A stretch of DNA of 63,596 nt from Fonticula alba ATCC 38817 (Eukaryota; Protista; Nucleariida). The stretch lies in the NCBI GenBank assembly GCA_000388065.2, contig KB932202.1. One strand, given 5' to 3'. The notes beneath the pieces were generated by a model, which ran no database searches, was not told the origin of the DNA, and was given only the letters and a program-made list of their open reading frames with translations. Position 1 is the first letter of the stretch. Each line of letters opens with the position of its first letter. The position numbers and the translations under genes were made by a program. Positions 51,944 through 63,596 of the stretch are shown here, in pieces.

Positions 51944-53018
51944 TCAGGCGGACGACCCAGCGGACCGGGAGGCATGATACTTTTGCACCCGGGCCACGAG
52001 CGACGCCCTGCCAGGGAGTACCAGCTCACTGGGCGAGGGGGGCCGGTCGGCCGGTCGCCGGATGTATGCATTTTGAAGGAGGGTCTCGGCAGAGGGCCGC
52101 TGGGGGGGGGGGGGGGGGAGAGGGAAGCGAGTCAGCGAAAGTGGGCGATGCAAGGGGACCAATGGCTCGGGAAGGGGGGCACGCGTGCCGGACGAGCCGT
52201 ACCGTCCGGTAATCCTTCTGCAAACACTGAGAGACAAACTCACGAAACTCGGTGCTTGCGTCGGGGCCAGACCCCGTCGCGGAGGGGGCGGTGGATGGGG
52301 GCCCAGCGCGGCCGGTGACACCGCCGCCGCGCGAGTCGGCCGGCGATGACCGCCGGCCAGCTGCTCCGGGAACCGGCGGCGGCTCACGCACGATCGCATA
52401 CAGCGCGCGCATCGGATGCAAGTCCGCATGGGGCGGGCGCCCATCGAACAGCTCGATGGCTGTGATGCCCACCGACCAGATGTCAGCCTGGCGGCGGCGG
52501 CGGGGGGGGGTCACAACCACCGGCAGCAACAGAGAAGGGGAGAGGGGGGGCCGGCGGAGGGAGGGGAAGGAACACATGTCAGCTTGGGTGCACACACGGA
52601 CGGCGGGAATGCATGGCCAGGACGAGGGGACATACACGTGTGTCATAGCCAACGTGGGTGATCACCTCCGGGGCCATCCAGGCCGGGGACCCGGCGAAGG
52701 TGGATCGCCGGGCCAGCGACCCGCCAGACAGCTCACTGGCCACTCCGAAGTCGCAGAGCTTCACCTCGCCCCCGAGCGACAGGAGGATATTGGCGGCCTT
52801 CACGTCTCGGTGCATCTTCCGCTCCCGGTGGAGGTAGAGCAGCCCACGCAGGACGCCGGTCATGACAATGGCGATCTCTGGCTCGGAGAAGGGGCCGGTG
52901 TGCTGAAGCTGGGTCGGCATGGGGGGGAGGGGGCGGTGAGTGAGCGAGCGAGCGAGCGAGAGAGAGAGAGAGAGAGAGAGAAGGAGAGGGAAAAGACATA
53001 AAAGAAAGGGAAGACAGG

Positions 53019-53061
<43 letters not shown>

Positions 53062-55196
53062 CACGCACCAGATCAAAGGCAGAGCCGCCGTTGACATACT
53101 CCATGACAATCCACAGCTGCTGACGATTGGCCGTGCGCCACGCACCATGGTACTTGGTGATGTGCGGCGACTCGACCTTCGACAGGAAGGCAATCTCCCG
53201 GCGAACGGCAGCCAGGGCCCCTCGCGAGGGGGCCGTCGACTCGTCGGCCGCCGAGGACAGGTCCTCCGCCGAGAAGTCCGCCCGACCAAGGGCTGGCAGA
53301 CCACCGTCGGCCGGCCCGCCAGGCCCACCACCGGGGCCGGCGGTCCCACCGGCAGGGCCACCATTGCCGGCGACCACGGCCACCGCCGCGGCCAGGAGGC
53401 GCTCCGGCCGCGAGGGAGACCCAGCCCCACCGGGCCCGGCGCCCGTGCCCGTCGGCACCAAGGAAATGATCTTGATGGCCACCTGCTTGCGGGTGGTGAT
53501 GTCGGTGGCCTTGAACACCTCGCCGAAGGCCCCGCGGCCTACCCACTGGAGCTGGCGATATCGGATCTCCGGCGGCAGGAGGTGGCGTTCCTCGACGGAG
53601 TCCGAATCCTCGTACTGGTCAGCGACGGCAGCCCCAGCAGCGCCGCCGAGTGTCAGCCGGCCGGCCGCGATGGACGGGCCAGCCGCCGGGGCCGACGAAC
53701 TGCCCACCGGCGCCGGCAAGCTGACCACCGGCGCCGGCGAGCTGACCACCGGCCCGGCTGCCACCACGCCAGGACGAGACACACGAGGGGCTGACGGGGG
53801 GCTGTCTGTCCGCGAGGAGAAAGCCCGGATGAGCTTGGACACGGAGGCACGCGGTTCGACCGGAGACGAGGGGGTCCCCGGGCTGGTGGGCGTCAGGGCC
53901 GTGGGCTGCACAGACCCGGGGCCGGGCCCGGAGCCCGGGGTGGCGCTGGCGGCCGGCCTCGACGGGCCACCCCCGCTGGATGCCACGATTCGAGACAGGT
54001 CCAGCGACGAGGGGGAATAGTCAGCCGAGGCACCGGGCCCAGGGCCTCCGGCCGGGCCAGCTAGCCCCACCCGGCGGGGAGGATACCGCGCGCTGCTGGT
54101 CGGAGTCATTGAGGCGCTGGCGGGGGTCGCAGCCGAGGTACCGCCAGTCTTCTGGCCCACATCCCCAGGGCCCTTGTCTCGTTGCAGTTGCCCCAGGACC
54201 CGGTGGAAGGGGGTCATACGGTGCCCTGGCGTCCCGGCGCTGCTGGCGGGCCCGGTGGTGCTGGCGGGCCCGGTGGTGCTGGCGGGCCCGGTGGTGCTGG
54301 CGGGCTCGGTGGTGCTGGCGGGCCCGGTGGTGCTGGCAGCCCCGGTGGTGCTGGCGGGCCCGGTGGTGCTGGCGGACTGGGTGGCACCGACAACACCGGC
54401 GGCATCGGCAGCACCGACGGCACCAGCGCCAGGGGCAGAGGCAGTAACCTTGTCACCCGCCCCGGAGCCGCGCGGAGTGACCACTTCGTCGGCCGACATC
54501 TCGGCCAGAGACAGCTCGTCATACGACGACCCGGAGGACGACATCGACGAGAGGACCACATTCCGGGACAGCCGATGGGATTCGCGCTCGCCGGGGCCCG
54601 GGGGGGGCGCCGGCTCGGCCAGCGCCTGCGACATGGCATCCGTGTCGGCGAGCAGGCGCAAATGCATGTCGGAAATGGGGAAGCTGTGGCGATTGCGCGA
54701 GGAAGTTTGCGAAGAGCCTGACCCACCGGACAGGGCCACCGTGGCCAGGAAGGGCGACCCACTGGGGACACTGGACAACGACGAGCAGGAGGTCGACGGG
54801 CTGAGGGACACCAGGGAGGTCGGCGAGCAGGAGGCCGAGGACAGCGGCGAGGACAGCCGCATGGACCCGGACAGCGGCGATGAGGGGGACATCAGCGAGG
54901 TGAAGGACCCATACAGGCCGCTGGTGCTGCCGCCAACCGAAGCCCCAGCCGAAGCCCCACCGGCGGCCACCCCGAAGGTGTGACCCACCGGCGAGGACAG
55001 CGAGAAGATGGACGATTCGCTGGAGGTGCTGGCCATCAGCGATGTCACCGACCCCGTCAGCAGGGAGGTGTAGGCCTCGGTCGAGGCGGACGTGGGCCGG
55101 CTGCCGGCGCTGGCCCGATCCCGCCGGGGCTGCTGGAGATTCGGCTCGCTGCCGGCCCCGGCCAGGGGCGATGGCCGCCCCGATGGGGGAGGCCCG

Positions 55197-55234
<38 letters not shown>

Positions 55235-57054
55235 GGCCGTGCCCTCCTTGCCGGCCAAGCTGCCGGCCGGCGGGGCGGCCGCATTCCCGACCGCCGGCGG
55301 CCCCGCCGTCGAGGGGGGAGCACCAGTCTGCCCCAGCGTCGACAGGGTCGGCGAGGAAGCGGTCCGGGTGAGGACACGCCCGGTTGAGTCCGGCCGCGGC
55401 GGCAACACCGTCACCGTGGATGACGACGCAAACACCAGGGCATCGATCTCGGCCAGGGTGGCGTCGGCCGCGGCCCGGGCCAGCTCCGCGCGTTGATCCG
55501 CCTGCAGTAGACCACCCCCGGGGACCGGCGGGGGCATGGCCGCCACCAAGGGCGGGGGCACATGCATCGGCCGGCCGGCCGGGGCGGCGGTCGTCATCGG
55601 CCGCGGCGGGAGCACCGGCTGCCCGGCGCCAGGGGGGGGCGGTGCCGCCATGGCGACCGCCGATCCGGCCGGTGGCGGCCGGCCACCGCGCGGGGCGAAG
55701 GGCGACACGGCCACCGCCGCCGGCCCGGCGGGGCCTCCCCCGGGCCCGGGGTCCTCCGCCAGGCCAGCCCCACCCACCGGGCTCAAGGGCCCGGTGTCAT
55801 ACGTGAGCGAGGTGATGTCCCCGGCGCTGGGGAAGGAGGACAAAGACCCCAGGGCGCCAGGCCCGCCGGGCCCGGCGGCCCCGGGCGGGCCCAAGAAAGC
55901 CGGGCCACCGGGAACATGATGCCCGGACCCGAGTCGTGCCGGGAGGGTCCCATACCGGGCGGGGGCCGCTCCGCCCGACGGCAAGCCCACAGGGTACGGG
56001 CTCGGCGAGGGGCCATTCCCGGGGCCGGGGTGGAGCGGCACGCCGGCCGGCCGGCCGCCGGCCCCATGGTAGGACGGCTCCCACGGGGAGATGGGCACCG
56101 CCGGGGAGGGAGCAGTCGGGGGCACCCCGGCGGCGGGGGGCTCGGCCCCCGGGCGCAAGACCGGCCGGCCGACGGGAGGCGGAACCATGCCACCGGGGCC
56201 GAGGCCGCCGGACAGGGCCACGATCGGCGGCGAGGGGGTCGACGACACGACGGCCGTTTGCGAGTGCGAGAAGGAGAAAGGCGTGGCAAAGTTCCGGACC
56301 GGGGTCGGAAGGAGGATGACAGTGGGGATGTGCGTGGAGGCCGGGGGCGCCGCCGGGGCGGGGAACTCGGCCATCGGGACCACGGCCACCGGGACCACGG
56401 ACGCTTGCCCGGGGAGTAGGGGTCCGCCGAGGGCCGCCGGCACGCCGGACTCCGGGCCCGGGCCCGGGCCAAAGTTGGCCGGCTCGGTCTTTTGGTACTG
56501 GAAGAGGGCATGCGCGCAGCGCTCCCACGCTTCGTGCCAGTCGTCCGGGGGCTGGTGCCAGCGGGCCAGGAGGCTGGAATACTCGCCGCCCGGGTTGAGG
56601 GTGTCGATGGAGGCCTGGGCCATGAGCGGTCGCACCGGGGCCGCGGCTTCCAGCTCGGCGCACGCCCGGCAGGCGGCAAAGCACTGGAGGCAGGCGCCGG
56701 CCAGGTGCGCCGGTACTCCGCCAGGATCCGACGACCCCTGGGCATCGGCCCCGGGCCAGGGAGGGAGGTGGACCACCCGCACGGCCGCCGCCGGGAGCAG
56801 GCCCAGCCGGCCCCGGTGCTCGGCCACAATGAAGCCCTGGTTCCGGGCGGCCGCACGCACGGCCTCCGCCACGGAGGTTGATGACGTGCCGCCGGAGGCG
56901 CCGGACTCGCCGGAGCCACCCACCGACCCGGCAGATGACGAGGACACCAGCACATCCAGGATGGTGATGGTGTCGCCCCGGCGGACGGCCAGCTCTCGGG
57001 CCGACATGTGGGGGCGCTCGATGTTTGCCACGACAATGGCCTCAGGGAGGTAGC
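51944..57054 (-). CDS. SH3-like domain + long low-complexity linker + C-terminal STE20/GCK-like Ser/Thr kinase; 5' end unresolved. Exons 57054-53069, 52908-52636, 52487-52203, 52099-51944
   Basis: Kinase motifs [85 protein letters not shown]|[38 protein letters not shown]..|RPSAETLL are typical of MST3/4/STK25-like kinases. SH3-like [13 protein letters not shown]...[11 protein letters not shown] at ~57045-56775. GT-AG introns are phase consistent. Confidence 0.9.
54242..54374 (-). repeat. Coding 18-bp tandem repeat, about 7 copies, encoding (ASTTGP)n
   Basis: Plus-strand unit GCTGGCGGGCCCGGTGGT repeated with two variant copies, inside the kinase-gene exon. Confidence 0.9.
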
Positions 57055-60000
57055 CTACAGAGGGGGAGGGGGGGGGNNNNNNNNNNCGCGCAGTCCCGCA
57101 CACGCACGGACGCACCAGCTCATTAGCACTTCCGAGGGAGGGACCGGCCCCGCACCACGTCACAAAGGTCCAGACTGCGCGGCCCCCTCCCCCCGGGGGG
57201 GGGGGGGGCGACCGAGGGCGGGAACGAACGCCCCACCCCTGGAGGGGGCTCCCCTCCCCCGGGCGGTTGGCCCCGCCAAGGCGACGAGAGCCCGCCCCCG
57301 GCCGCCGGAAGATCGCCCCCGTTGCCGGCCCCTTGCCCGTGCTCTGGCGGGCGGCAATCACGGATGCCGGAGGCAGGAATGCGCCAGCCAACCGCACGGC
57401 TGGGAGCCCTTGCGCGGGGGGCCGGCCGCGCTGCCGGCGCCCCCGGACGGGGCGCCGGCCCGGGGCGACAAAGGCGAAATCAAAATAGAGCCCCCCTCGG
57501 CCGGCTGGCCGGCCGGCCGGCTCTTGCCGCCCGCACGAACGCGGGCGTGCGTGCCCCCGCGCCCGGCGCGGGCAGAAGCCAGGGCGCGCGCTCCCTCGGC
57601 GCCGGGAGGCGCATTCGACCTGGCCGGGGGGGGGGGAGGGCGCCGGCGCGAGGGGAGCTGTGCGCACGCGCTCGAACGCGCCCCCGGGCACACAAGAGGG
57701 CCGGCAGGGGCGGCATGCGCGCCCTGCGTCCTGGCACACCAGCCAAGGGTGTCATGCCTTGGTCCCCCCCCCCCCCCCCGCCCGCCGGCTGCCCCTTTGG
57801 CGCCCCGTACCCCCGGAACGGCCGGAAGGCCCCGCGCGCCCCTCTGCCCCCTCCTCGCCAGGCACACAGCAGGCCCAGCAGGGGAAGCATGCAAGGACGA
57901 CGCGGACGCCGACGACACCTTCGGCTCCCTGCCCGGTGGGTCGGCGCGCGCGCGCGCGCGCGAGTGCGGAAAAATGGCCCCCTCCACTGGCCGGGCCTCG
58001 GTGGCGCGGGCCCTGGCGCCGGCGCCCGTCCTGGGGACCTGGGGGCCTGTGCCTGCCCACTGCCGGCCCCCGGCCGGCCGCGGCGACCAGGCCCCGGCGG
58101 ATATTGTGTTCGCTCCTCGGCGGGCACCGACACCCCCCGACCCGGCGGTTGCATTTGCGCCCTCCCCCCCGCATCGGGAAACGGCCGCGAGGGGGGGGGG
58201 GGACGGCGAACCGGTGCTCTGGGGGGAGGTGCCCGCGCCAGCCGGGGCCCGCGCCGGCGCGCCGCTAAGTGCCGACCCACCTCCCGGATGCTGCGGGATG
58301 CAGAGCGCGCGATGCGCCCGCCGGCCTCCGCATCTCGGACATGAGTCACACCGGCCAGGGACAGACGGGGGCGGGCGCCCGCGCGGCCTGGCTCGCGACC
58401 GGGGCCGGGGGCAGGCAGGCGGAGCAGGCCGGGCCGGGCCGGGCCGGCGGATCGCTCCCGGGCCCCCCCTTCCGGCCGGCCGCTGTTGCCAACACGGGTC
58501 CGCGGTGGCCGCCGGCACACACGCGGCCGCGCCCACTGCGCATGGGGGCCCGGGCGGGCGTTTCGCCGCGTGCGTACACGCGCCTCCGCCGGAAGCCGCC
58601 GGAACTTCCCCGGAAAAGCCCTCCCCCTCCCAGGCAGGCATATTAATTCGCGCTCTGCCCGGGGGGCAGGCAGAAGTCGGCGAAGACGGCCAGACAGATG
58701 CGCAACGCGGCCGCCAGGGAAGGCCGGCTCCTCCAGAAAGGCAATATGCCTCCCGGGCATACCTCCTCGTGGCACGCGGGCATACGTGTGCCCAGGTGGG
58801 TGTGTGTGTGTGTGTGTGTGTGTGTGCCTCGGGGCTTTTTAGCCGGTCTAGCCCTCGACGGGCGCGGAGGCCCCTGGCGCCAGAGCTCAGAGGCAAGGAG
58901 CGAAGGGCGTCCGGGGGGGGGGGGGGACCGGAACTCCGGCCAGAGAGAGAAAGGCCGCCCCGCCGAGGGGGGATGTAAATATAATAATCCGCCAGATATA
59001 TTATTCCCGAGGTGTTTGCGAATGCTCGCTGCCCCCGGACTCGGCCAAGGCGTGGCCCGCTGGAAAGGGCGCCCGGTGTTTGTTCATGTGCCGCATTTGA
59101 CAGGGCTTCACACTCGGGCGAAGGGCGGGCCCGGGGTCGGGCGGGGCGGAGGCCCGCGCGCACTCGGGCCGCGCGATCCCGCCTCCGCGCTCTCGCGCAA
59201 ACGCACCCGGCTCATGGTGCGTGGCCACCCTCGCCAGCAGATGGCCCTGGCGGCCACCGCGAGTCCTGGGGGGGGGGGGACGGGGGTGCCGCGGGCACCA
59301 CGCCAGGTGTGGCGCCGGCGCAACGGTCCGCCCAGCCTATCGTGCCCTTGCTGCCCCCCGCCCCCCCCCCCCGGGGGGCGGGCGGGGTCGAGGGGCAACC
59401 GGCCGCGCCCGCAAACAAAGGCTCACTGCTCTTTCCGGTGACAAGCATATGTAAGCAGCCGTCGCTGGCTGCGCCTCTGCGTCGACCCTGGCGAGAGCAA
59501 CGGAGGCGACGGCGGCGGCGCCGCAGATGTGCGCCACCAGGCAGGGCCGCCTCCGGGTGGGGGTCGCCGCCGGCGCGCGCCCGCACCCATGGCGCCCCGG
59601 CCCCCGCGTCCCCCCTCACCGGCCCCGCCAAGGGGGCAACCGTCGAGCCCGGGGGCCCGGCACCGGAGTCTCGGCTCCGGGCAGGCGCAGGGTGGTGGGC
59701 TCTCGGCGCGCCCGGAGCGCGGCGCGTCTGCCCAGCGAGAGCGTGGGGGATTAATTGGCCCCCGCGTTCCCGGCGTAAGGGGGCGGGCGGGGGGGGGGCG
59801 GAGGTGCGGCTGACGCCGAGCTGGGCTGCGCAGCAGCAGCAGCAGCAGCAGCAAACCGCGCGCATAGCGGCTATCCTGCTCCGCATCACGTCCCCTCTCC
59901 TCGGCCGGCCCGCCGGACTTCCGTCAGTCTGCGTCGCGCCCTCTCCTCCCCCGCCCCTCCGGCCCCGAACACCGGGTGTTCCCTGGGCAGGGGGATATCC

Positions 60001-61171
60001 TCCTCGAGCCGTCGGGTCCCGCGGTGTGCGGCGCCGGCCCTGCCTGTCGCACGGGGCCGCGACCCCGGGCGCGTTCCGCCCTCGGACCAGGCGGCGGCCA
60101 GCGAGCATCCCGGCGTACGTGGTGAGCTCGGCCCCCGCGCCCTTGCGAGGATGTGGTGGCCAGCGACAAGGCAGCAAGGGAGGTGTATGATCTCGCTGGT
60201 GGCCTGCCCTGTGTGTCGTCGCCCCTCGATGTGCGGGCGGCCGCCGCTCGTGCAGGCCTCCGCCGCGATTCCCCCCGTCCGGGCGGGCCCGCCGTCTGGG
60301 GAGGCAGTCCGTGTCGCGGGCGGAGAGCACCCCTCCAGCCGCGGGGCGCAAACAGTGTCCCAGGCGGGAGGGGGGGGGGGGGGGGGCCGGGCAGCAAGGA
60401 CCCAAAGGTGGCCCCACCCCGTCCCGTCCAACCCTCCCCACAAAAACCGAGGGACACCCCACCAGAGGAGCGAAGAGAGGGGGAGAAGCCACCCCAACCC
60501 CCCCCCCAACAGACAAAAGGGAGCGGGCCGAGAGGGGGGGGGGAGGCCCGAGGAGCCGACGCCAGGGCGCCCCCCTGTTCCCTCCTGGCCCGGCCTCCAA
60601 AAGGGGGCCTCCGGCGAACGTGTCGCCGCGGGAAGGGCGCGCGCGCGCAGAGCGCGTTCCCGGCCCCTCTGCCGCACTCCCCCCCCCACCCCCCGTGCGC
60701 GGGCGTATTTTGATGCCCCCGCTGAGAGACAGCCGGAGCCGCACCCCACTGCTCCTCGCGCCCCTGCTTGGCGGGAATAGGAGAAGGCCCCAACTCGCGG
60801 TGCGGTCAACCCCCGGGGGCCGGGGGAGGGTAGAGGCACCGGCGGGCGCGTGCCGGGCGGCGGCGGCGGCGGCGGCGACGGCGGCGGCGGCGACGGCGGC
60901 GGGGAGGGGGGGGGGACACGGCTGTTGTCGCGGCCGCCCGCGCTGCACCCTCCGCCGCCCCCCGCCAGCCCCGGCCCCCTCGGTCGGCGCCTCGCGGCCA
61001 GCCGGCCCGGGGTGTTTCAACCGACTGAGACGGCCCGTCTCCCTCGGGGGCCATGATTGTAATGCAACCTCCGGCCGATCCATGGCGAGTGAGCCTTGCC
61101 AGTAATATCCGCCGGAGGGAGGCAGAAATCGACCACTTTTCGGNNNNNNNNNNAGGGAGAGAGAGGGGGGG

Positions 61172-61202
<31 letters not shown>

Positions 61203-61214
61203 CAGAGGACGCAC

Positions 61215-61359
61215 CATTGGCATCGGGGCTGATGCCGACGGCCTTGGAAAGCTCGCGCGCCCGGAAAAAGCGCAAACCGCGCCGCGTGATGAGCCCCTCC
61301 CGGAAGGAGAGCTCACATTGACGGAGGGCCTCGCTGATGTCCAGCGGAAGGGCGGTCAT
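61215..61359 (-). CDS. First exon encoding a DIP2-type DMAP1-binding domain; downstream exon uncertain
   Basis: MTALPLDISEALRQCELSFREGLITRRGLRFFRARELSKA aligns by eye with DIP2 LPAEVRESLAELELELSEGDITQKGYEKKRAKLL. In-frame TAA just upstream of the ATG; GTGCGT donor at 61214 (phase 1), then a (CT)n tract and an N-gap. Confidence 0.7.
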
Positions 61360-61965
61360 CGGCTCAATTTAAGACATAGATGTGGACCGGCGGACGAGGG
61401 CGGCGGCGGCGGCGGCGGGAAGGAGGAGGAGGAGGAGAGGAGGGGGAGGGGCAGGAGGGAGAATCAAAGAGAAAGAGAGGGGAGAAGAGGAAGCAGGCAG
61501 GGGAGGTCGGGCGGGGAGGGGCACAAGGCGCGGCCGTGCGGCAAGCGGGCAGGGTGCGCGTGTGTCTCGGGGAGACGGAAGCAAGTGCGGGGAAGCAGGG
61601 AGGCAGCGCGGAGGGAGCGGGGAAGGGTGGAGGGGGGGGTGGCAGGCAAACAACGGAAGGAGCGAAGGGGAGGCGGTTGTTGGCGCGAGGAGATCCCTGC
61701 GCGAGAGAGAGGAATGTTTGACAAAAAGCATGTCCACGGAAAGGGATGGCACATGTCTCGTTTGCTATGCCCCAGCTTGCCAGGAGCCGGCGGCCCCGGG
61801 GTGTGGCTCTCTCCCTTTCTGCGCTGGGGCCCGGGCGGCGCGAGATCTCCCTCAGTCCGCGCCGGGGCCCGTCCTCCTGGTCGTCGGCCGTGGCTGTGCC
61901 GCTCCCTGCGTGTCCCGGGCTTCGTGCCGACCTGCCCACCGCTTCTTGGGGACAAGAGGAGGACC

Positions 61966-62003
<38 letters not shown>

Positions 62004-62904
62004 CAGAGAGAGAGAGGCAGAGAGAGAGAGAGAGAGACCCCCGGCTTGGGCTAAAACGCGTGCACCGATCGCCAGGAATTCGACCGCCCGCCGGTTCCCC
62101 CGCCCCCATCCATGTCTGGGCGGCTGGGGAAGAGGCCCCGGCACAGATCGGCACCTCATCTCGCGTCGCGCGCGGCCGCGGTGGGTGCAGCGGTTATTTC
62201 GGGGGCCGGCGCACCCTAGATCCTAAGGCGCCCCGGGGGGCGAAGGGGGGGGGGCGGGGGAACCGGCGGGGGGGCGGGGGGCGGGGAACAAGAGCGCGGA
62301 GACACGGCCGAACCCAGAGACGCGCACAGGCATGCAAGCGCCCAAACGCAAGGACGACTCGGCCACACGGCGACATGCTTCGGTTTCGGCGCACGCGCCC
62401 CGGCCTGCGTGCTCAAGCGCGGAATTAATGTGGACGAGACCCGCGAAAAGCGCGCGAGACGCCGAAGCGGGGGCAGGGGGAACGAGGTCCAGGGGGCGAG
62501 GACATCCTCCCTGTGCCCTGTACCCCCCCCTCCCTGCTCCGCCTGTGCCGGTGGGGAAAGGGGGGGCGGGGGCGGGGGCGGGAGCCGGGGGCCGGGGGCC
62601 GGGGGGCCCGGGACCCGGCAAGATGCGCACCCAGCGCTGACCTCCGCCCCCCACCCGGGGGCGCCGCCCCCGGCGGAGGCCCGGGGCAGGAAGCAAGGGT
62701 GGGCGAAGAGCCGGAGTGAGCCCCGCGCATAGCATATTATCGGCCGGGTAGGTTTCCATGACCGCGGCACTTGCCAACTCTCGGCCGTCCGGGCCGGCTG
62801 GTCGGCGCGCGCGCGCGCACACACACCAAAAAAGACCCACCAAGAACGTGGAGCGCGGCGTAAGCACGCAGGGCGTTGGCACCTTGAGGGAGGCACGTGT
62901 CCCT

Positions 62905-63596
62905 TTTTAACCCGTGTCTGCTGTTGGAGAGGGCCGAGCGTGGTCACGCGACATTCCCGGAGGGTGGCATGTGTAGTGGTATCCCCCAATCTCTATAAAC
63001 CAAGTCACAGGTTGAATTACAAGATCCCCACGTGAACGGCCCCGTGGGAGATTATGGCATGCTTGAATGGCATTCCTCCTCAGGAGGAATGCGGGGTAGA
63101 TCGACAGCCAGATGGCCGCCGAGTACCGGGCCAGTTCGGTGGCCCAGGAAAGGAGGGAGACACGCGTGCGCGCGGGGTTCTCAGATCCACCCCACGACCA
63201 ACCCAAGGTCAAAAGGGGGACTCCCTGCGGGAGCCTCCTGAGAGCGAAGACCTTAGCAGCTATGACGATGTTGACTATGTTGACGATGTTGAAGTATACG
63301 CTTGTATGCTAAGACAACCTGACAGAGTCTCAGCCCAGCCTGCGAACATCTGTTCTAAGGCTTCCTCTCGAACCCCTTTTGTTACACGAATTGCTTTCTA
63401 TTTTGCCCCCCCCCCCAAACCCCCCCCTAGGTCGAGTTACCTTGTCTCGTCGCTAGTAATCTCATCACCCTTCTGGTTCGGTACGCCCTCCTTCATGCCC
63501 GAGCGGTCCCTAACCAGTAGTAAGATTTCCGGTATAGCTTCCGTCAAAGCTTCACTCCTTTGACGTAAGACTGGATCCGTGAGAACCCTGCTACAG
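62905..63596. other. Compositionally distinct (less GC-rich) segment at the window edge; candidate mobile-element or foreign sequence
   Basis: Abrupt drop in GC by eye after ~62905; several hairpins; a stop-free minus-strand frame runs in from the edge to TAA at 63439-63437. No diagnostic transposase, RT or integrase motif seen. Confidence 0.3.

Follow-up and report, generated by a model that had tools for sequence, protein, structure and literature searches.

A GCK-type STE20 kinase gene with an SH3-like domain and a candidate displaced first exon in the nucleariid Fonticula alba

Introduction

The DMAP1-binding domain (Pfam PF06464, DMAP_binding) is a poorly understood module which, in the published literature, has been found only in DNMT1 and DIP2. 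There it sits at the extreme N-terminus, ahead of a methyltransferase or a ligase body; DIP2 has tandem FAAL-like AMP-binding domains downstream of it. Nucleariid DIP2 is reported to be without the domain (Mondal et al., 2022; PMC9342972). In the literature we found no paper which links the domain with a kinase or with an SH3 domain. Exactly such a combination had been claimed in a first-pass annotation of a 63,596-nucleotide stretch from the nucleariid Fonticula alba ATCC 38817 (GCA_000388065.2, contig KB932202.1; the whole stretch is called the window below). A DIP2-type DMAP1-binding domain, an SH3 domain and a STE20 kinase were assigned to a single minus-strand gene at 51944-61359. Here we report on this gene. 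It is certain that one gene encodes an SH3-like domain and a GCK-type STE20 kinase; the presence of a DMAP1-binding domain is a different matter.

The nearest kinase domains are those of GCK-II and GCK-III (MST3/STK24, MST4, STK25 and MST1/2). In these proteins the kinase is N-terminal, and the groups are known for a SARAH domain or, in GCK-III, for a C-terminal dimerisation/CCM3-binding tail. The PAK kinases are organized differently. An N-terminal regulatory region, which features CRIB/PBD or PH domains, is followed by a long linker and a C-terminal STE20 kinase. The Fonticula gene has the layout of the latter and a catalytic domain closer to the former.

A complete GCK-type kinase at the C-terminus

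The window corresponds to C2:2069510-2133105 in a 31.3-Mb assembly of 214 contigs. The genome has about 72% G+C and its spliceosomal introns are short. All protein and domain searches were made exon by exon and never on a joined, spliced protein. The kinase is encoded by four exons, A to D (Table 1), which are separated by introns of 160, 148 and 103 nt. All four exons are open and the reading is continuous from A through D to the TGA at 51944; the kinase domain runs across them without interruption. Pfam Pkinase (PF00069) was matched above its cut-off, with E 6.9e-12 in exon A, 3.7e-24 in exon B and 7.1e-05 in exon C. The Gly loop, the Lys of VAIK, the alpha-C Glu, HRD, DFG, the activation-loop Thr and a STE20 signature of the WMAPE type were all read in the translations. 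Among solved structures in the PDB, exon B was best matched by STK24/MST3, MST4 and STK25 (E 2e-25), exon C by MST1/2, STK25 and MST4 (E 1e-12), with PAK1 at only E 1e-7. Overall, the top-ranked solved relatives were STK24, MST4, STK25, MAP4K1 and STK4, and PAK1 was five orders of magnitude weaker. The assignment as a STE20 kinase was thus borne out by cut-off, motifs and best matches. As judged by its translation, the kinase is complete, of the GCK type and active-looking.

For a GCK-type kinase the predicted protein is unusual in three respects. The catalytic domain is C-terminal, with just about 45 residues after it. It is preceded by a disordered stretch of about 1,060 residues rich in Pro, Ser, Ala and Gly. 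In the N-lobe, the beta-3 Lys and the alpha-C Glu are set apart by about 85 inserted residues rich in Gly, Pro and Ala (53290-53545, minus strand). A second low-complexity insert is located in the C-lobe, in exon C. HRD, DFG, the activation-loop Thr and the WMAPE-type signature are shared with GCK-II and GCK-III. In contrast to these, the Fonticula kinase has neither a SARAH domain nor the GCK-III dimerisation tail, and the GCK-III arrangement of an N-terminal kinase with a C-terminal tail is not found here; the N-lobe insert, the SH3-like domain and the long linker are additions. From PAK it differs in the kinase domain itself, which is nearer the GCKs, and no CRIB/PBD or PH domain was detected by Pfam. 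With the kinase N-lobe as query, a word-based protein search was blank or returned a single weak fungal match; neither an orthologue nor a model of the kinase gene was returned, and the search of 1.84 billion proteins described below did not bring up such a model either. The kinase gene is moderately unusual and lineage-specific.

A divergent SH3-like domain at the start of exon A

The N-terminal region of exon A had been called an SH3 domain. When its first 105 residues were compared with Pfam, the top three families were all SH3: SH3_9 (E 0.0038, 17.5 bits), SH3_2 (E 0.0086, 16.2 bits) and SH3_1 (E 0.14, 12.3 bits). The respective gathering cut-offs are 30, 21.8 and 22.9 bits, and none was reached. 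With the whole of exon A no SH3 family appeared at E 1 or better. The SH3_2 alignment extends over profile positions 4-54 of 55 and spans an insertion. A phmmer search of the PDB yielded weak, correctly placed matches to the SH3 domains of spectrin and vinexin, each split into halves. In a look-alike search of the ESM Atlas, which uses a protein language model, every named match was an SH3 cluster (score 0.90). An AlphaFold2 model of the region from the single sequence, without an alignment, had a predicted local distance difference test (pLDDT) value of 43.6 and was too poor for use.

Compared with canonical SH3 domains (SH3_1, SH3_2, SH3_9), the strand order and the motifs GD-x-I-x-I-L and G-x-x-G-L-L-P align across the whole SH3_2 profile. 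However, the usual ligand-binding aromatics, i.e. the Tyr of ALYDY, the WW and the Tyr of SNY, appear by eye to be replaced. On this evidence we regard the region as an SH3-like domain which is divergent and has about 38 residues inserted in a loop. The earlier call survives as an SH3-like domain, by its top Pfam families and its ESM Atlas clusters, and fails as an SH3 domain by Pfam standards, all matches being sub-cut-off (E 0.004-0.14).

A candidate first exon upstream

Exon A begins within the SH3-like fold, without a preceding ATG. Therefore, an upstream exon is needed. Its acceptor AG (57056-57055), with GC TAC directly after it, calls for an exon which ends in phase 1. The candidate, here called exon 1, starts with the ATG at 61359 and ends with AAT G, followed by GTGCGT; its donor GT is at 61214-61213, in phase 1. 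Start codon, donor, acceptor and phases were all confirmed in the sequence as previously annotated. An in-frame TAA is present 12 nt upstream, so that coding in this frame starts at ATG 61359. At codon positions 1, 2 and 3 the G+C fractions of exon 1 are 0.65, 0.50 and 0.81, comparable to 0.67, 0.46 and 0.85 in exon B. The codon score, calculated with a model trained without exon 1, was positive and similar to that of real exons. Its description as an orphan coding exon of the same strand and a compatible phase was supported.

Is exon 1 the start of a DMAP1-binding domain? PF06464 was its sole Pfam match (E 0.27), and the 12.5 bits fall short of the cut-off of 27. Residues 2-29 of exon 1 were aligned with profile positions 3-30 of 111. 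A phmmer search with the 48 residues against 1.84 billion representative proteins gave no real relative and no N-terminus of DIP2 or DNMT1. Two matches, P0001 and P0002, were rejected as translated tandem repeats in which the query was matched in 5-10 stretches each. Summed weak matches to such repeats can reach E 1e-14 without homology. A search of the PDB was blank and one of the ESM Atlas brought no usable match. A paralogue of exon 1 was not found in the Fonticula genome; there the exon is unique. A six-frame genome search with PF06464 was silent everywhere, the controls included, and is uninformative.

The DIP2 body was also sought. Between exon 1 and exon A no ligase-like sequence had been noticed in the first-pass annotation, and indeed none of nine long open reading frames (ORFs) of 57087-61143 matched a Pfam family. 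Tandem FAAL-like AMP-binding domains were not found downstream of exon 1. A six-frame genome search with PF00501, which covered a separate DIP2 body elsewhere, detected only single-domain acyl-CoA-synthetase-like loci, far away, though divergent FAAL-like domains might escape such a search. In sum, exon 1 and the DMAP1-binding domain of DIP2 and DNMT1 have in common about 28 residues that align with the conserved profile start, and a position at the extreme N-terminus. They differ in that the score is sub-threshold, the match extends over just a quarter of the profile and neither a ligase nor a methyltransferase body follows. By sequence comparison, we consider this a motif-level resemblance which is too weak to call, and the DIP2-type domain as annotated could not be upheld: 28 residues at E 0.27, and no relative by phmmer or in the PDB. 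If exon 1 does belong to the kinase gene, a true DMAP1-binding domain would be a possible, yet the less probable, outcome. In the Pfam scan of the three proposed domains, Pkinase was above its cut-off whereas SH3 and PF06464 were below.

A proposed path from exon 1 to exon A

In the scaffold, exon 1 and exon A are separated by a 4,057-bp contig between two gaps of 10 N (Table 1). This had been read as a 4.1-kb intron across two gaps. The layout is probably an assembly artefact, as indicated by a 65-bp dovetail of the 4-kb contig and by split neighbouring genes. For this analysis the region was extended with L002 and L003; numbers beyond 63596, the end of the window, equal 63596 plus the L002 position. 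The last 65 bp of the 4-kb contig (61079-61143) are identical to L002:3652-3716, i.e. to the first 65 bp of a contig directly after another gap, about 6 kb away. This sequence has only two copies genome-wide, both at contig ends. Furthermore, the composition shifts abruptly at the edges of both gaps, and the coding potential of 57087-61143 is low on both strands. It is probably a misplaced assembly piece.

A different path was obtained by exact overlaps. The first 33 nt of the exon-1 contig are identical to the end of contig L002:5001-6244. At 144 nt into the latter, on the minus strand, an exact 17-mer is found which represents all the sequence between the gap at 57077-57086 and TGTAG. In the 167 kb searched, the 17-mer occurs three times. 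Tiling via the 33-nt and the 17-nt overlaps resulted in an intron of 194 nt with 92% pyrimidine, which starts with GTGCGT and ends with CTGTAG; it was assembled by a script solely for its length and composition. For comparison, the next intron of the kinase gene has 160 nt and 86% pyrimidine, and six known local introns have 103-185 nt. That the kinase contig directly adjoins the exon-1 contig was considered and rejected, as an exact dovetail is absent and the two are linked only via the third contig. No redundant contigs which cover either gap edge were found in the genome. Among the genes on the same strand within 83 kb, only the kinase lacks a start, and no orphan 5' exon other than exon 1 is present. 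Most likely, exon 1 is joined to exon A across a short intron masked by mis-assembly and not across 4.1 kb. Because the 4.1-kb intron is probably an artefact the odds of the join are raised, though it is still unproven; exon 1 probably belongs to the kinase gene.

Table 1. Coordinates of the candidate exon 1, the kinase exons and the intervening assembly features in the window
Feature	Position	Strand	Content and basis
Candidate first coding exon (exon 1)	61215..61359	minus	48 codons + 1 base, phase 1; translation, codon composition
Intron 1, start	61154..61214	minus	GTGCGT donor, (CT)n, C10, then contig end at gap
Assembly gap	61144..61153		10 N
Non-coding contig of 4,057 bp between two gaps, probably misplaced	57087..61143		no Pfam match, low coding potential, shared 65-bp end
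Assembly gap	57077..57086		10 N
Intron 1, end	57055..57076	minus	acceptor tract C9 T C5 TC TGTAG
Exon A	53069..57054	minus	1,328 codons: SH3-like domain, Pro/Ser/Ala/Gly-rich linker of ~1,060 residues, kinase N-lobe
Divergent SH3-like domain	56762..57043	minus	Ser/Gly-rich insertion of ~38 residues; sub-cut-off Pfam SH3 matches
Kinase N-lobe	53069..53560	minus	Gly loop, VAIK, alpha-C Glu; Pfam Pkinase E 6.9e-12
Exon B	52636..52908	minus	catalytic loop HRD, DFG, activation loop, STE20 signature of GSPxWMAPE type
Exon C	52203..52487	minus	kinase C-lobe with low-complexity insert
Exon D	51944..52099	minus	end of kinase domain, short tail, TGA 51946-51944

First exons and contig order in the neighbourhood

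The region from 57 to 74 kb consists of ten contigs of 0.4-4 kb. Two neighbouring genes are split in it. Exons 2-5 of COX5A, cytochrome c oxidase subunit Va, are in one contig at 70740-69934 (L002:6338-7144, minus strand). A presequence-like exon 1 is located two contigs off at 73060-72979 (L002:9383-9464, minus strand); it has 27 codons and phase 1, and its donor is GTGCGT. Between the two parts of the gene lie an unrelated contig and poly-C/G junk. In the first-exon contig a branch-site-like motif is followed by a run of about 80 C, and C runs also precede COX5A exon 2. The other split gene is Spa2/GIT-like. Two GIT_SHD repeats (L003:396-800, minus strand, E 5e-15) are in one contig (gene part at L003:1-800), a long coiled coil with the C-terminal region (L002:1448-3641, minus strand) is in another, and the two look like parts of a single gene. 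They are parted by five contigs, including all of COX5A on the same strand.

The introns of the kinase gene (52909-53068, 61154-61214 and 57055-57076) mostly consist of (CT)n and runs of C, with GTGCGT as the most frequent donor. Such tracts coincide with contig breaks, and this makes first exons prone to separation from their genes. On the explanation favoured below, contigs near the kinase locus would have the wrong order, or would be chimeras, at long C/G and CT runs; those of COX5A look chimeric at poly-C/G. Whether exon 1 of the kinase might be the missing first exon of COX5A was considered as well and rejected: it contains six acidic residues and is not presequence-like, and the better exon, with the same phase and the same donor, is in another contig.

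Competing explanations

Overall, we lean towards a single minus-strand GCK-type kinase gene in which exon 1 comes first, followed by a short pyrimidine intron, with the 4,057-bp piece misplaced. The product would be a GCK-type STE20 Ser/Thr kinase of about 1,600 residues. It would start with a short helical N-terminal peptide, specified by the 48-codon exon, and continue with the divergent SH3-like domain. A linker of about 1,060 residues, disordered and rich in proline, would connect the latter to the C-terminal kinase with all catalytic motifs. On the real chromosome exon 1 and the SH3 exon would be split by about 0.2 kb of almost pure pyrimidine intron, and the 4,057-bp piece would belong elsewhere. 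The product would have kinase activity. Protein binding or targeting may be the role of the N-terminal peptide and of the SH3-like domain, and the PxxP-rich linker may give intramolecular control.

Several points weigh against this explanation. The 33-nt and 17-nt overlaps are of low complexity. The bridging contig diverges past the 17-mer and would need to be chimeric at a long C run; such chimerism is plausible because of the case of COX5A. By chance alone, phases match in one of three cases, and COX5A exon 2, for which a better partner exists, offers another phase-1 acceptor nearby. The ATG of exon 1 is in a weak Kozak context with C at -3. Finally, the join is read here from the genomic sequence of one species. 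The 48-codon ORF might instead be outside the kinase gene, as the first exon of another gene whose remainder is lost in the gaps or is on a misplaced contig, or as a chance ORF of an upstream region; the true first exon of the kinase would then be in a gap. The contig which overlaps the exon-1 contig by 33 nt runs into 1.1 kb of non-coding DNA and not into the kinase, the scaffold order is unreliable, the peptide is without relatives and the Kozak context is weak. However, the composition of exon 1 is coding-like and its donor matches the consensus, no other headless gene was found on this strand within 83 kb, and the kinase needs exactly such an exon. We consider an independent ORF unlikely, if a serious contender.

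The scaffold might also be right as given; exon 1 and the SH3 exon would then be separated by a true intron no shorter than 4.1 kb. The order is the scaffolder's, first introns can be long and no gene was found in the 4 kb. The unique 65-bp dovetail of the 4-kb piece with another contig, the just 103-185 nt of the six local introns and the abrupt change of composition at both gap edges make this very improbable. The original proposal, in which one protein combines a STE20 kinase and an SH3 domain with a true DMAP1-binding module of the DIP2/DNMT1 type, draws on PF06464 as the only Pfam match of exon 1, at the conserved start of the profile, and on the plausible join of exon 1 to the kinase. 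In addition, as nucleariid DIP2 is reportedly without the domain (PMC9342972), a free-standing or otherwise attached copy is not absurd. On the other side, the match has E 0.27, 12.5 instead of 27 bits, and covers 28 of 111 profile positions; the search of 1.84 billion proteins ended with two tandem-repeat artefacts, and the PDB and the ESM Atlas were blank. Moreover, exon 1 ends after 48 residues and would lack the greater part of the Pfam domain. This proposal is improbable. We return to the single kinase gene with exon 1, a short intron and a misplaced 4-kb piece as the favoured explanation.

Implications

The scrambling of the assembly has practical consequences. Locally, it occurs at long C/G and CT runs which are located in first introns, and first exons are often parted from their genes. 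Where gene models or novel architectures in this genome extend across 10-N gaps, independent evidence is required.

If the full architecture is true, the usual order of a GCK-type kinase would be reversed, with catalysis at the C-terminus and an SH3-like domain at the N-terminus. It would also be a new context for a module otherwise seen at the N-termini of DNMT1 and DIP2. Both would have a bearing on how signalling proteins of opisthokonts were assembled by domain shuffling. That a nucleariid-like protist, whose DIP2 is reportedly without it, has joined a genuine module of the DMAP1-binding type with an SH3-like domain and, at the C-terminus, a STE20 kinase of the GCK type is improbable. The module would then have been a mobile protein-binding unit before, or independent of, its attachment to DIP2 and DNMT1.

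Further observations at contig ends

A competing donor at 57115 had been pointed out in the 4-kb piece. At its extreme end (57110-57122, minus strand) ATGAGCTG is followed by a consensus GTGCGT donor. The GTGCGT is present as claimed; the donor is in phase 2 and therefore cannot feed the SH3 exon. Together, ATGAGCTG and this donor could mark the beginning of the gene which in reality follows the 4-kb piece. At the other end of the 4-kb piece, the 65-bp sequence terminates on the minus strand in a Kozak-like GCCATGG. The sequence just past the 65-bp repeat recurs at the start of a third contig (L002:9042-9100) and then diverges into homopolymer junk.

The exon-1 contig shares 91 bp with a contig 8 kb away. 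This overlap was initially taken as evidence for mis-ordering and then dropped; it is part of a dispersed repeat and carries no information on order. An Rfam search of 61000-63596 was without a match. The end of the exon-1 contig (63397-63596) is a dispersed repeat of lower G+C with at least 40 genome copies of 73-100% identity, several of them at contig edges. It is probably a mobile element or the terminus of one, and it is followed after 63596 by a gap of 1,034 N.

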